From assembly GCA_000388065.2 (NCBI GenBank), contig KB932206.1: a stretch of 7,614 nucleotides of DNA; one strand, given 5' to 3'. Both the position numbers and the translations under genes were made by a program. The notes below the pieces were generated by a model, which ran no database searches, had not been told where the DNA came from, and was given only the letters and a program-made list of their open reading frames with translations. This DNA is from Fonticula alba ATCC 38817. Taxonomy: Eukaryota > Protista > Nucleariida. Below are positions 505 through 7,165 of the stretch, piece by piece (positions within the stretch are counted from its first letter, which is position 1; each line of letters begins with the position of its first letter).

Positions 505-2200
505 ATGGACGACCTTGACATCTACGGCTCTGTCCTCGAGGAGGAGGAGGTGCGTCTTGGATACTGGTTGTCACCTTGCTGCTGCTGCTGCTGCTCATCC
601 TGGCCACTGATCACCGCATGTCCCTCGACCCGGCAGTTCTCCGCCGCGGCCATCAAGCCATCCTCGATCGAGCCGGCTTTGACCACATCGGATACCCCCT
701 CGGCCGTGGTACAACCTATCGCCCCCCCTCCCCCCCCCCTTCCGCCTGATTGGACACCTCCGCTCTTTGCCAATGTTGCCACTGTGGCTAACGTGACACG
801 CCTGGCGTGGCTCTCCCTGCCTGCTATGTCAGCCGGTTATCCTTTCTGAGACCAAGCACCTGGGCGCCCCGCCGGGCGGTCCCATGGCCGGCGACCATCC
901 CGGCCCGGATCCCTGTACGCCGCGTTTCGTTTGCCTTGTCTCCTGAGTGCCTTGTGATGAGCCTAACCCCTTCCGCATTTCTTTCTCCCTCTCTCTCTCC
1001 CTCTGCTTCCCAGTGCGCTTGACCATGTCTACCACCGCAGTCCCGACCGGAAGCCTGGCTCCGCCTATGCAGCGCCCCGTGCCAGTGGCTCGTGCGCCGA
1101 TTGCACAGCCTGCTGGTCCCGGCCCCGGCCCCGGCCCCGGCCCCGGCCCTGATCCCACCCTCGCCGACATGCCTCACATGTCGGGCACCAGTGCCTCGCC
1201 GCAGGAGGCTCTTTCTGGTGCTGGCGAGACCAAGTCCTTCTGCTATGTCTACAACATGCATTGGGTGCGTTCTTTTTTGCCTGCGACGTCACATGCTGCT
1301 GGCGTCTCTTGCGCTCTCCTTCCCGCCTCCCCCACACGCATACACACACACATACACACACATGTGTATATGCACATGGCGAATTCAACTCACGCGACGT
1401 TGCACCTTGGACCTGGCTGGTGTGTTGCTTCTGCGCAGTGGACCTCGGATGAGGATTTGTTGAAGATCGCCACCACCTTCAACATCACGGATGTCCGTCA
1501 AATCATTTTCGCTGACGAGAAGCTAAACGGGATGTCTCGCGGGTGCGTTCCATGCGTGCACACACACACACACATGCACATACACATGCCCACTCATCTA
1601 CTCTCCTCTGTGCTTTTACACCCGAGCTGCGAAAACACCACCTGCCCCCCCCCCCTCCCTCTCTCTCTCACACACACACACACACATACCCACAAAGTGC
1701 CGCTAAGATCGAGTTTTTCCAGCCGGACTCCGGGCGTCGCTTCAAAGAGGCTATCGACTCCCAGTGCGTCCATGCATTCAACGCCACACCCTTCCCCGGC
1801 CAGAACGCCTGCATCTGCCAGGCTGCTTCCCATGGGGTCCGCCTTTTCCTCTGCTGCCTACTGACCGACCTCCTGCCAGTCTTGTTGAGCACGACGAGAA
1901 GAAGATCCATGCCTCCTTCGAGGAGCCGGTCGAATTTTCCGGCGGCTGTAGCCAGGAGAATGAGGCTCGGCCTGGACGCTCCGGTCGCTCCGGGCGCCGC
2001 GGCGGCAACGCCAATCCTCCAAACCCTGGTGGTATGTTCCCAGTATCAATCCCTGTGCCCCNNNNNNNNNNNNNNNNNNNNNNNNNNNNNNNNNNNNNNN
2101 NNNNNNNNNNNNNNNNNNNNNNNNNNNNNNNNNNNNNNNNNNNNNNNNNNNNNNNNNNNNNNNNNNNNNNNNNNNNNNNCCCCCCCCCCACACACACACA

Positions 2201-2234
<34 letters not shown>

Positions 2235-3241
2235 TACACGCATACACGCGCACGCATGCGCACCCCTCCTTCCATGTACTGACCTCTCCCATGGAATAGC
2301 TGGGCGTCACCCCCATCAAGGTGGCCAGCATGGGCAAATGATGCCCCCGCATATGGGCCACCAGTTCCCCCCGCCTGCTGGGCACCCCCATATGCTGCCC
2401 AACTTCCCGGGCGGTATGCTTCCCCCGCATCCGGGTGGTGGTCCTGGCGTGCCCCCCCTCGGACCCGGCTTGCCAGTTGTCAACAACCCAGCGGCGGCGG
2501 CGGCGGCTGCCGCTGCCGCCGCCGGCTTCAGCCTTCCCTTGCTCTTCCCAAATCTTGGACCTGGCCTAAACCCCGGGCCACCCGTTAATATGGGGCCCGG
2601 CTCGCAAGGCCCCCCTCTGGGCATGGGTCATCCGCCTGGCGACCATTTATTGGAGTGCGCAGTCTTTCTTCCTCCTCCTCCTTTCTTCTTCTCCTTCTTT
2701 TTCCCTGTCATCTGCTTCGCCGCCGCCGTCGCCGTCGCCGCCGCTGCCATGTTGTCTCGTCCTCTGGGCCTCACTTTGACTGACATCCTGTGCCTGCCTT
2801 GGTGGATGAATGGGGACGGTTCTCTCGCTCTTGCTCTCACGAAGGCGCGACGGGGGCCGCCATCAATCGCGTGAAGCGAACTCCGCCTCGCGCGGGGGAC
2901 GCGAGTCGCGCGATCATCGTGATCGATCGCGCGATCGTGATGACCGGAGTGGTGGCAACCGCGATGACCGAGGCGGTGGCAGCCGTGATGACCGAGGCGG
3001 TGGCAGCCGTGATGACCGAGGCGGTGGCAACCGTGATGACCGAGGCGGTGGCAATCGTGATAGCCGCCGCGAACGCGACCGTGACCGGATAAACGAGCGC
3101 GATTCGTCGCGGTATCGCGAGTCCCGCGAGCCCCGCGAGTCCCGCGACCGCGAGCGCGATCGTGACCGCGAGCGCGATCGTGACCGTGACCGCGACTCAC
3201 GCGAGCGTCATCGTCGGTCCTCGTCCTCCTCGCACCGGTAG
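505..3241 (+). CDS. CPSF6: Cleavage factor Im large subunit (CFIm68/CFIm59, CPSF6/7-like); join(505..549,637..708,833..914,1014..1264,1439..1542,1698..1763,1880..2031,2300..2654,2845..3241), 1524 nt, 507 aa
   Basis: All 8 introns are GT..AG with matching phases. CTRAY branch points lie at 607, 788, 963, 1861, 2279 and 2780. The N-terminus MDDLDIYGSVLEEEE resembles the CPSF6 DIY-acidic start. The spliced RRM reads CYVYNMHW|WTSDEDL...DEKLNGMSRG, resembling CPSF6 LYIGNLTWWTTDEDL...NGQSKG. A Pro/Gly-rich middle and an RD/RE/RS tail follow, ending at TAG 3239-3241. CPSF6 versus CPSF7 cannot be resolved outside vertebrates. Intron 7 spans an N gap. Confidence 0.85.
1115..1150 (+). repeat. Coding (GGCCCC)n hexamer repeat encoding (Gly-Pro)6
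   Basis: ggtccc followed by four exact ggcccc and ggccct, within exon 4. Confidence 0.9.
1333..1362 (+). repeat. Imperfect (CA)n microsatellite in intron 4
   Basis: cacacgcatacacacacacatacacacaca. Confidence 0.85.
1558..1694 (+). repeat. Two (CA)n tracts and a (CT)n tract filling intron 5
   Basis: CA tracts at about 1558-1585 and 1667-1694, with ctctctctct just before the second. Confidence 0.85.
2062..2179. other. Assembly gap (118 N) inside intron 7 of the CFIm68-like gene
   Basis: Run of N flanked by poly-C. Confidence 0.98.
2189..2262 (+). repeat. (CA)n microsatellite decaying into CATA/CGCA units in intron 7
   Basis: Directly visible; lies upstream of the branch point CTGAC at 2279. 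Confidence 0.85.
2491..2523 (+). repeat. GCG/GCC/GCT run encoding poly-Ala11 in the Pro-rich region
   Basis: Translated [17 protein letters not shown] in exon 8. Confidence 0.85.
2936..3055 (+). repeat. Coding 24-bp tandem repeat x5 encoding RDDR(S/G)GG(N/S)
   Basis: Units start at 2936, 2960, 2984, 3008 and 3032; consensus cgygatgaccgaggcggtggcarc. Confidence 0.9.
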
Positions 3242-3342
3242 TCGATCTGCCCTGGAGAACACTCGACCGGTCAAAGGACTGCCTCACGCCCCCGCTCCGT
3301 GATGTGTATCTACTTGTGTATATTTATATATGTTTTATCCAT

Positions 3343-3400
3343 GTATGTGCGTGTGCGTGTGCGTGTGCGTGTGCGTGTGCGTGTGTATGTGTATATGTGT
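3343..3400 (+). repeat. (GTGCGT)6 array at 3347-3382 within a GT-rich tract
   Basis: Six exact tandem hexamers, with GTATGT at 3343-3348 and at 3385-3390. Confidence 0.9.
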
Positions 3401-3473: not shown

Positions 3474-3493
3474 ACACACACACACACACACAC
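3474..3493 (+). repeat. (AC)10 microsatellite between the convergent genes
   Basis: Directly visible. Confidence 0.9.
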
Positions 3494-3805
3494 GCGCGCG
3501 GCGTTTGGGTCGGATATATTGGATGAACAAGAAAGGTTGATTGGCAAGGACATGGGCGGGCGCCCTGCTCCTTCCTCTTCTGCCACGGGGGTGCACAGCA
3601 CTCCCGCACACGCGTGTCAAGTTCCTTTCTCCCCTTTTCTTTGTCCGGCAGGCAGAGGCGGGATCGAGGCAGAGGGCGCGTGCACATGAGGCAGATGTGG
3701 ATGGACGCATGGCGGAGTCTAGGGGCCTCAGTGGGGAGGGCAAAAGTGGGTGATAGGGGGGCGGAGGGGAAGCGATCAAGGCAACCATCCGCTGGATCCC
3801 ATACT

Positions 3806-3981
3806 TCAGGGAGAGCCGGACTGCGGACTCCCACCATCGGTGGCATAGGACCAGCCCCACTCGACAGAGTAGCCCATCCCCGAAACGAAAAAGGCCACCA
3901 GGTCCTCGGTGCCGGCCTCCACCACCCGGTGGCAGGAAAGCTTCGGCGGCTGGCGAGCGCTCCGACCGGCAGTGGAGCCAT
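3806..3981 (-). CDS. Terminal coding exon of the kinase, absent from the ORF track in this frame
   Basis: It follows a C-rich tract and the acceptor gtgcgCAG at 3984-3982. The phase-1 join gives [58 protein letters not shown], which parallels the C-terminal halves of repeats 1 and 2. Confidence 0.8.
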
Positions 3982-4409
3982 CTGCGCACGGGCGAGGGGG
4001 GGAGGGCGGGGGGAGGGGGGGGCATGACAGACGATGTTAGAGGTGGCCTAGACGCCGGAGACACACAGGCGGCGCGTGTAACGACATACCGGCAGAGGAG
4101 ATGGCCGCCTCCGGAAGCATGAGGTCGATGAACACGACAATCGGTCGACGACGGGTGTTGCTGACGCTGAGGGAATAATACCCGGGGATCGGCCGCGCGG
4201 GAGACGCCTGGCCCAGGGACTGGAGCCCGGCATCGCCTAGCCAGAGCTCCGGATCGGTGGCCGCCGCGTGGATGGGGGCCTGGGGGTCCGAGCAGGGGGT
4301 AAATCCCTTGACCAGGCGCACACCATTGAGGAAGCTGATCTGATCGGTGGGAGCCCCGCCGGCGACAGTGGACCCAGTGACGCCAGTCGAGGATGGAGGG
4401 CTGCCGGCA

Positions 4410-4447
<38 letters not shown>

Positions 4448-7165
4448 ATCCAGCTGCTGGCCAAGAGGGCCGCCCGGGCTGCTGGGGTTCAAGACGGCCA
4501 GCTGGCGGAAGCGCCAGGTGAACGTGGCATCCGGCCCGGTGGTGGCGCGGCCCACCAGCGACGGCGCATGCGGCCCGGGGGGAACCACATGGCGCAAGAG
4601 GCAGATCGGCTCCGGCCCGGTGGACTGCTGGCTCAGCGTCCGCTGATGCCGGGCCACGGCGCCATGGCGCTCATCCAGCGCGCCGGCCGACGTCAAGGAC
4701 AGGCCATTCTTGTCATACACCGTGCCATGCAGCTCCACCAGCAGCTCGATCGGGAAGGGGTAGGAGTTCTCCACGAAGAAGCTGATCTGGTGCCGGGAGG
4801 CGTCACCCGAGTCCAGGGCATCGGAGGACTCGCCCGGGGTGGCCGGCGGCTGGAGCTCCTGCACGCGAGTTTCGAGGGTAATCCCGGAGAGGGTCTCCCG
4901 GCGGACGGTGGCCCCGGTGGGCTGGCGCTTGAAGGACAGCGGCACATCCGGCACGCGCTTGGCAGCCGGCCCGGCCGCCGGCAGGGGGATCGACGCCAGC
5001 CAGCTCCCGGAGCCGGGCTGGATCACGGCTCCGACGGAGAACCCGTCATCGGACAGGGTGACATCGCGCAGGGCCACCGGGTCGGTCATGCGATCCGGCC
5101 CGGGCGACTCGCCGGGAGACAGGCGCGGCAGCGTCTCGAAGGTGAAGTGGCTCCCCGGTGGCAGGGTCAAGGACACGGCATATGCCTGCAGTTCATCGCT
5201 ATGCAGGTAGAAGATGAACTCCGAGGTGGTGCGATCCAGGAGCCGGTGAAGGACCAGCCCGCCGAGGCGCTCCGAGCGGATGGACATGTTGGACCGGAGT
5301 TGGCCACGCTCGACCAGCGGCCGGAGCTCCATCGGCAGGGTTGACCGAGCCGGCGAGGCCACCTCCACCGGGCGTGCGCCGCTGATCTCCAGGGGCGGCG
5401 GCGAGGGCGGGCGGGAAACCACCGGCGACGGGGTGACCGGCTGGTGTGGCGAGTCCAATTGCAGCAGTGACAATGGCGACGTCAGCATCAGCTCCGGCGG
5501 GGGGAAGCGCCCGGCGACCACCGGCGTGGCCAGGAAGTCGGAGCTGACCGACCCGGAGACCGGGGAGATGGTGTCGATGCAAATTGACAAGGGAGACCCT
5601 TGGGGGGAGGCCCGGGCGTTGCCGGTTGCCGGGGGCGCGGGTGGCGGTGCCGCGGCCGGGGGCTCGGCCGCGGCCGAGCTGGCGGCCGCAGCAGCCGCCG
5701 CTTTCTGGAAGGCGGCATCCACCGCCGCACCGGCCGGCACAATGGGCTTCAGCATGGAAATGATGCGCGGGAAGAGAGGGCGCTTGGCCGGGTCGTCCTC
5801 CGCACAGGAGAGGACCAAGTCAACCGCGTCCGGCGGGCAGGAGGGCTGGACCAGAGCGCGGACCTGGGCATGGTGTGGGTGGCAATCCGGAGGGTTAGCA
5901 GCTGGACGGTGTTGGGGGCGGGGGGGGCGGTTAAGTCGGAGGCACAGCCAGGGGGGGGCCTTGCTCGCACCTCCACCGGGTCCAGGCCGAAGCCGGGGAT
6001 AACGCGGCGGAAGTTCCGGGCGTCGGGCTTCACGCGGCTGAAGAGCTCGGCAATGACAATGCCGAAGGAGAAAACATCCACACGTTCGTCATATGGCATG
6101 CACAGGATGACCTCCGGGGCCATGGTCCAGTCGGTGCCGCAGACGGTCATCGGCCGGGCGTGGCGCCCGGTGGAGGCGGCCGCCGCGCGGTCCAGGGCCC
6201 GGGCGAAGCCAAAATCGCACACCTTCGGGGTCATGGTCTCCGGGTGGAGGAGGATATTTTCGCTCTTCAGGTCGCGGTGGATGATTCCCAGGGCGTGCAG
6301 GTACGCCATGGCCTGTGGCGGAGGGGGGGGGGNNNNNNNNNNNNNNNNNNNNNNNNNNNNNNNNNNNNNNNNNNNNNNNNNNNNNNNNNNNNNNNNNNNN
6401 NNNNNNNNNNNNNNNNNNNNNNNNNNNNNNNNNNNNNNNNNNNNNNNNNNNNNNNNNNNNNNNNNNNNNNNNNNNNNNNNNNNNNNNNNNNNNNNNNNNN
6501 NNNNNNNNNNNNNNNNNNNNNNNNNNNNNNNNNNNNNNNNNNNNNNCCGGCGACCGGGTGCTGACGGGCCTGGAAGCAGCATGCCGGCGTACCTTGGCCA
6601 CGCCGAGGGCGATCTCCAGGCGGATTCGCCAAGGGAGGTCCCGGCGCTGGACCACATACGAGAGATTGGCGCTGCCAGCCTTCGGCCGGCGCGAGGGGGG
6701 GGACAGGTCCTTGAAGGAGGGGTCCCCGGGGCGGGGGTCCGCGGCGCCGGGCCCCACAAACTCGGTCACCACACACAGGCGCCCGTGGCGGTCCCGGGCG
6801 CTGCCCATGAATTGCACGATGTTCGGATGCCGGGCGGCCGTGAGGATGGAAATCTCGCGGGCCCAGTAGCGCTCGAGCTCCTCATTCGAGAGCACCACCT
6901 CATCGGAGCCGCCCTTCAGCGGAACGGTGATCTCCTCGGAGTCGCTGCCGCTGTCGGAGAAGTTGTCGAAGGGATCCTCCTCGGAGGAATCCTCGCCGCC
7001 ACTGCCGCCGTCGGCCGTCTGGAGCATGGATCGCGGCGGGGGGTTCAGGCATTTGATGGCCACCGGCGTGCCGAAGAGCTCGCCGGCGAAAACGCCGCCG
7101 AAGTTCCCGCGACCGATACATCGACCGAACTCGAGGTCCTCGTAGCGAAGGCTAAGCGAGTCCAT
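3806..7165 (-). CDS. TKL protein kinase, LISK (LIMK/TESK-related) type, with a long C-terminal region holding three beta-rich repeats; complement(join(3806..3981,4090..5863,5971..6312,6593..7165)), 2865 nt, 954 aa
   Basis: ATG at 7165 in context gccATGg. Kinase motifs: [79 protein letters not shown] and the late FRR..PGFGLDP segment are what I associate with LISK-type kinases of amoebae and fungi. Introns: 6592-6313 (GTACGC..CAG, phase 0), 5970-5864 (GTGCGA..CTAAC..CAG, phase 0), 4089-3982 (GTATGT..CTAAC..CAG, phase 1). Stop TGA at 3808-3806. Confidence 0.85.
4412..4447 (-). repeat. (GCC)12 trinucleotide repeat encoding poly-Ala12 in the linker between kinase C-terminal repeats 2 and 3
   Basis: Twelve consecutive ggc on the + strand, in frame with the kinase. 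Confidence 0.9.
5746..7135 (-). other. Protein kinase catalytic domain (exons 1-3), predicted active
   Basis: The Gly loop, beta3 Lys38, alphaC Glu104, HRD, DFG and APE are all intact. The splice junctions restore canonical spacing: IALGVAK|AMAYLH and LDPVE|[11 protein letters not shown]. Confidence 0.9.
6333..6546. other. Assembly gap (214 N) inside intron 1 of the kinase
   Basis: Run of N next to poly-G. Confidence 0.98.

Follow-up and report, generated by a model that had tools for sequence, protein, structure and literature searches.

What does a gene on contig KB932206.1 of the nucleariid Fonticula alba ATCC 38817 (assembly GCA_000388065.2) encode, and is the long tail of its product built from copies of a single domain? 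The question arose from a stretch of 7,614 nucleotides of this contig (hereafter the window, always meaning the whole stretch), for which a first-pass annotation had described a minus-strand kinase of the LISK type, the family of LIMK and TESK, fused to three tandem, highly diverged, beta-sandwich-like repeats (R1, R2, and R3). We found that one minus-strand gene accounts for the observation, and that the architecture is real: four exons code for a kinase, followed by a linker and by an orphan tail rich in beta structure. The threefold repetition could not be detected. We lean, with modest conviction, towards a gene product of about 953 aa that joins a LISK-type Ser/Thr kinase to a linker of about 150 aa and to a beta-rich region of about 490 aa without detectable relatives, in which R2 most likely forms a seven-stranded Ig-like sandwich.

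The gene structure and the coding frame are solid. The four exons are separated by GT-AG introns (Table 1) and amount to a coding sequence of 2859 nt. The gene inferred earlier is thus correct, while its spliced length becomes 953 aa instead of 954. Joining exons 1 and 2 restores an unbroken kinase motif (IALGVAK / AMAYLH), and reading through intron 3 would meet a stop codon at 4039-4037. We rejected an extra intron in exon 1 (6757-6672), which would be 86 nt long and would wreck the frame of the kinase. The window has a GC content of 0.6-0.73. Throughout the gene, the GC content at third codon positions (GC3) is higher in the proposed frame than in the other two, and it falls to 0.58 in the 3' flank. 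This indicates that the tail is translated in the frame used by the first-pass annotation. All searches described below were run exon by exon, and R3, which spans an intron, was handled as two pieces (with an X at the junction in the scripts).

The assignment of the kinase rests on its two first exons. Exon 1 encodes the N-lobe, with the Gly loop GRGNFGG, the VAIK motif, and the Glu of helix alpha-C, and it matches the Pfam families PK_Tyr_Ser-Thr (2.8e-8) and Pkinase (1.9e-6). Exon 2 matches Pkinase much more strongly (6.9e-28). The catalytic motifs (GxGxFG, VAIK, HRD, DFG, and APE) were all found, and to judge from them the N-terminal Ser/Thr kinase domain appears catalytically intact. When exon 2 was compared with solved structures, LIMK1 (3s95) was the best match (69.7 bits, 2.4e-18), followed by FUS3 (62 bits), LIMK2 (60 bits), and B-Raf (56 bits). 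The N-lobe alone is closest to CSK, CTR1, and TNNI3K among proteins of the PDB, and the margin in favour of LIMK1 is hence modest. The alignment of exon 2 with LIMK1 spans the activation segment (TVVGNPYWMAPE in LIMK1) and continues through a long stretch after the APE motif (YDE[KR]VDVFSFGIV...RV..D...R...FGL). This post-APE stretch (RV.ADPDYLPRT.DFGL in LIMK1) is typical of LIMK and TESK, which form the LISK family within the TKL group. The Fonticula protein also shares with LIMK1 the motifs MAYLH..IIHRDL, DFG.AR, and TV.G...MAPE. Within its own genome, the nearest paralogue of the kinase reaches just 55.9 bits (42% identity), which makes the gene a singleton, closer to human LIMK1 than to its sister kinases. 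The earlier claim of a LISK-type kinase is therefore borne out, and these similarities justify the name, if not a phylogenetic placement. Our literature search returned nothing relevant on a LISK or on the kinome of Fonticula.

The protein also departs from the known members of the family. LIMK has LIM and PDZ domains, whereas the Fonticula protein has neither and carries its kinase domain at the N-terminus. It differs from TESK by its C-terminal tail of about 640 aa, which is unrelated to the tail of TESK or to anything else. Its N-lobe has two in-frame inserts that are a further difference from LIMK (minus strand, 6890-7050 and 6665-6750). The first, between VAIK and alpha-C, is acidic and rich in Ser and resembles a phospho-acidic patch of the casein-kinase type; the second, after the hinge, is rich in Pro.

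LIMK and TESK act on ADF/cofilin, and a candidate substrate is encoded in the same genome. We found seven ADF-H matches, one of which corresponds to a two-exon cofilin-like gene (L006, G000:C7:905623-906126, plus strand). Its first matched exon opens with ...SSGVAVSDDC, an N-terminal Ser-Gly-Val motif in the usual phospho-acceptor context. This exon begins directly after AG with SSGVAVSDDCVNKYNELK, which suggests that the start codon probably lies in a tiny upstream exon. A role of the gene product as a cofilin kinase is plausible from these sequences. The enzyme would phosphorylate the N-terminal serine of the organism's own ADF/cofilin and thereby restrain the severing of actin, in the manner of LIMK and TESK.

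We then turned to the repeats. The peptide blocks quoted in the first-pass annotation are all encoded on the minus strand where it placed them, with R3 split into two pieces (4342-4091 and 3979-3845) that straddle intron 3, and the linker ahead of R1 is indeed rich in Pro and Ser, as well as in Ala. The statement that the same four-block pattern occurs three times did not withstand the tests. Smith-Waterman alignments compared with 500 shuffles gave z-scores of 0.95 (R1-R2), -0.09 (R1-R3a, where R3a is the part of R3 in exon 3), and 0.4 (R2-R3a). Making long gaps cheap, which mimics variable loops, gave z-scores between 0.85 and 2.6 for R1-R2, depending on the penalty, and of at most 0 for the pairs involving R3. 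Alignments between units made with hhalign had probabilities of 0.1-0.8%, covered 5-20 columns, and never fell in the proposed register. When the four blocks were aligned without gaps from their first residues, the summed scores were 12 (R1-R2), -27 (R1-R3), and 19 (R2-R3). In shuffled sequences, the best collinear chains of four blocks with these lengths average 66-68 (standard deviation 7), and all 1000 shuffles outscored the proposed register. The best chains in the real sequences (79, 62, and 67) were matched by 5%, 80%, and 54% of the shuffles, respectively. Only block A (19 for R1-R2, 12 for R2-R3) and block B (23 for R2-R3) scored positively. At the DNA level, the one repeat that TRF and a repeat finder revealed was the (GCC)12 poly-Ala tract (4411-4447). 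The similarity between units is thus at chance level by every one of these measures. What R1, R2, and R3 have in common is a strand-like alternation of hydrophobic residues, with no demonstrable repetition of sequence; beta strands with loops of Pro, Gly, and Ser in between generally look like this.

Relatives of the tail are equally absent. At E<=10, Pfam gave no match for R1, R2, R3a, the last exon, or the whole tail, and no family was found in the first part of exon 3 either. A word-index search of 5.8 billion clusters returned nothing for the tail and nothing for R2 at E<=10. HMMER, run exhaustively against 1.84 billion representatives, returned a single match (P0001, E 8.6e-6), a bacterial protein of 1226 aa with ten near-identical Ig-like repeats, each of which matches, with VYLSDNGSAVGSATVQADGTWSASVTL, the same 37 aa of R1. 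We rejected it as a homologue: the near-identical copies add up to this score, which reflects a single short resemblance to a hairpin motif. This hairpin (5080-5000, minus strand; residues 73-109 of the 416-aa query) resembles the motif ...DG.W...V.L of P0001 at the level of the motif only. The sole match of the tail among PDB sequences involved its poly-Ala tract and was discarded. In the organism's own genome (31.3 Mb searched), the tail, R1, and R2 retrieved only the gene itself and two weak matches, one of 41 residues containing an in-frame stop (L003, E 0.02) and one that, once translated, proved to be of low complexity and was rejected (L005, E 0.2). By these searches, the tail is an orphan, with no credible relative and no paralogue in its own genome. 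The first-pass annotation had called the architecture one it did not recognise, and this is true insofar as our searches gave no relative of the tail at all.

Structure prediction singles out R2. In a model of 420 aa covering R1, R2, and R3a, the predicted local distance difference test (pLDDT) averages 40, 343 of the 420 residues are below 50, and four of the five models are near 27. Within it, R1 has six short strands (pLDDT 31-39), R2 has seven (pLDDT 50-68), the poly-Ala tract is a helix, and R3a has a few strands of low confidence. Fold searches with this model gave only generic Ig-like matches. Folded alone with AlphaFold2 in single-sequence mode, R2 gave the same seven strands (model residues 5-11, 14-23, 42-52, 58-69, 106-113, 122-128, and 133-143) with two low-confidence loops, a pLDDT of 57, and a predicted template-modelling score of 0.49; three of five models exceeded 50, and the core blocks reached 60-79. 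The four blocks of the first-pass annotation correspond in R2 to the strand pairs 1-2, 3-4, and 5-6 and to strand 7. A search of 48,161 chains with VIA, a tool for which Z <8 may reflect merely a common arrangement, gave as best matches the ApaG domain of FBXO3 (Z 7.9, 101 residues, 3.1 A), PDIP38 (Z 7.5), and the GAE domain of GGA2 (Z 7.4). Many more Ig-like sandwiches lie within one Z unit, and transglutaminase barrels are also among the matches. Foldseek placed PDIP38/POLDIP2 on top (E 2.4e-3, prob 1.00), with nothing at E<=1e-3. The R2 model thus suggests that this unit is probably an Ig-like sandwich of no assignable family. The proposal of beta-sandwich-like units is retained, at modest confidence, for R2 only; R1 and R3 are candidates for additional beta modules.

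Several points weigh against the reading that we favour. The R2 model was built from a single sequence and is of moderate confidence, its best match in VIA (Z 7.9) is no better than those that the tool reports for models lacking a true match, and neither R1 nor R3 has a confident model. Since the tail has no homologue, conservation lends no support to its being constrained as a folded domain. On the side of the kinase, the catalytic loop reads HRDLKSEN in place of the HRDLNSHN of LIMK1 or the HRDLTSKN of TESK, and thus departs from the LISK form; the choice of substrate may differ from that of LIMK.

One alternative is that the tail is essentially an intrinsically disordered, low-complexity extension, acting at most through short linear motifs, and that the strand-like blocks and the R2 model have been over-read. 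Such extensions are common in amoeboid kinases. The poor confidence of the 420-aa model fits this view, as do the abundance of Pro, Gly, Ser, and Ala, the poly-Ala run, the lack of homologues and of Pfam matches, and structural matches in the range expected when there is no true one. However, R2 alone recovers its seven strands, with core blocks of higher pLDDT and three of five models above 50, and single-sequence AlphaFold2 seldom gives such models for disordered sequence. The strand segments also show hydrophobic alternation and are poor in Pro and Gly, unlike the linkers, and the top score of R2 in the Atlas language-model search was 0.90. Disorder throughout the tail therefore seems unlikely to us.

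A different alternative, which developed the resemblance proposed in the first-pass annotation, holds that R1, R2, and R3 are diverged copies of one beta-sandwich of the DUF1935 (PF09149; SMP-1, ARM58, and small calpain-related proteins of kinetoplastids) or CalpD_C (PF26741) type, set on a cofilin kinase for targeting to the membrane or the cytoskeleton. The lead comes from Atlas. For the whole tail, the four clusters reported included DUF1935 (0.84) and CalpD_C (0.83); for R2, two unnamed clusters scored 0.90 and 0.88, followed by CalpD_C (0.87, 173 shared features) and DUF1935 (0.86, 168). The family scores are all below 0.9, where they are leads only. Recognition was low (1304), and a third of shuffled proteins score 0.8 or more. 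Moreover, the resemblance noted in the first-pass annotation cannot count as evidence separate in kind from a language-model score. The domain is a small all-beta module, as R2 is predicted to be. SMP-1 is a beta-sandwich, and ARM58 has four tandem copies of DUF1935 (PMC3940081), so a tandem array would have a precedent, even if membership of the present units is doubtful. This family has been associated with targeting to the membrane or the flagellum (PMC3940081, PMC7912814). The positive scores of blocks A and B in some pairs go in the same direction.

The direct comparisons with DUF1935 lend this no support. At E<=10, the PF09149 profile gave no candidate among the tail segments, and a six-frame scan of the genome was equally negative, although the filters of HMMER drop very weak matches and could miss a remote relation. 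The structure of SMP-1 (2fe0) ranked only 36th when Foldseek was run with the R2 model, whose pLDDT is only 57 (E 0.064, template-modelling score 0.23, root mean square deviation 13 A), and neither 2fe0 nor any other DUF1935 structure was among the top 50 of VIA for R2 alone. A hypothetical protein of Leishmania major (1r75) matched the 420-aa model with Z 6.1, and was outside the top 50 with the R2-alone model; we take it to be a DUF1935 structure, an identity for which our literature search gave no confirmation. The chance-level similarity between R1, R2, and R3 also argues against copies of one domain. Finally, DUF1935 has been described as an N-terminal calpain-related domain exclusive to kinetoplastids (PMC7912814), and the Peptidase_C2 profile found no calpain catalytic domain in the Fonticula genome. 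The resemblance to calpain-associated modules is thus kept as a lead from the language model, while profiles and structural comparison fail to confirm it, and we regard three DUF1935-like copies with targeting function as doubtful. The related possibility, that the tail consists of two or three very diverged copies from the DUF1935/CalpD_C superfamily fused to a cofilin-kinase domain, appears to us rather improbable. The module has so far been tied to calpains and to membrane-targeted proteins of kinetoplastids. If its presence here were true, it would be an ancient, portable device for targeting to the cortex or the membrane rather than an accessory of calpains, and its host would be a relative of fungi.

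That R2 is a remote ApaG/DUF525 (FBXO3, PDIP38/POLDIP2) or adaptin-ear (GAE) domain, i.e., a seven-stranded Ig-like protein-binding sandwich like those that top its VIA and Foldseek results, is very improbable, because the likeness is one of shared fold (Z <8, with many unrelated Ig-like folds within one Z unit), identity is 9-14%, there is no sequence or profile similarity, and no family in Pfam was matched.

We therefore return to a LISK-type kinase followed by a linker and a beta-rich region without relatives. The most likely working model is that of a cofilin-type kinase in which one or more lineage-specific C-terminal beta modules, held on a flexible tether, set location or regulation. 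The tethered module or modules would be the protein-binding, targeting, or autoregulatory part of the enzyme, in a role that would parallel that of LIM and PDZ in LIMK and of the C-terminal region in TESK.

Table 1. Features of the minus-strand kinase gene, in positions of the window (GC3, GC content at third codon positions in the proposed frame).
Feature	Position	Strand	Length	GC3	Description
Exon 1	6593..7162	-	190 aa	0.87	Start Met codon at 7162; ends IALGVAK, then GT
Intron 1	6313..6592	-			GTACGC...CACAG; includes a run of N at 6333-6546, so the 280 nt are only the assembled length
Exon 2	5971..6312	-	114 aa	0.88	Catalytic loop, activation segment, APE, LIMK-like post-APE stretch; ends GFGLDPVEV, then GT
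Intron 2	5864..5970	-	107 nt		GTGCGA...CCCAG; shifts the reading frame; kinase resumes after GLDPVEV
Exon 3	4090..5863	-			Kinase end, linker, R1, R2, second linker, R3a
Exon 3, first part	5300..5863	-		0.85	End of kinase domain (about 5863-5740), then Pro/Ser/Ala-rich linker of about 150 aa
R1	4922..5284	-	121 aa	0.88	Beta-strand-like blocks
R2	4502..4903	-	134 aa	0.89	Seven strands, predicted as an Ig-like beta-sandwich; two long loops of low confidence
R2-R3 linker	4343..4501	-			Contains the poly-Ala tract, (GCC)12 at 4411-4447; predicted helix
R3a (end of exon 3)	4090..4342	-		0.81	R3 blocks A and B; a codon split by intron 3 has its first base at 4090
Intron 3	3982..4089	-	108 nt		GTATGT...pyrimidine tract...GCGCAG
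Exon 4	3806..3981	-	last 58 aa	0.79 (0.63 in the other two frames)	R3 blocks C and D; TGA stop at 3808-3806; no Pfam family

The window contains a second gene, convergent with the kinase gene (1150-3241, plus strand), that resembles a homologue of CPSF6/CPSF7 (CFIm 68/59). An exon with an RRM (about 1400-1561) matches CPSF7 (3n9u, E 8.9e-4) and CPSF6 (3p5t). It is followed by a middle part rich in Pro, Gly, and Met (about 2240-2620) and by a tail of Arg-Asp/Arg-Glu repeats with copies of RDDRGGG (2810-3241), like the RS-like domain of CPSF6. Microsatellites of the (CA)n/(TG)n type at 3330-3400, 3480-3500, 1280-1330, and 2190-2240 flank both genes, in untranslated regions and introns. There are two runs of N, which may be assembly gaps, one of 118 bases (2062-2179) that adjoins a CA microsatellite in the neighbouring gene and one of 214 bases (6333-6546) in intron 1 of the kinase gene that adjoins a poly-C tract.

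Amoeboid TKL kinases often bear lineage-specific tails, and the architecture will come as no surprise to specialists; its use lies in annotation and in offering a target for cloning. The tail may represent a new lineage-restricted domain, on the basis of one orphan sequence and a modest model, with no repeat statistics in its favour. If the enzyme is a cofilin kinase, it would place control of actin turnover of the LIMK/TESK type on the fungal side of the opisthokonts, with a targeting part unlike LIM and PDZ.

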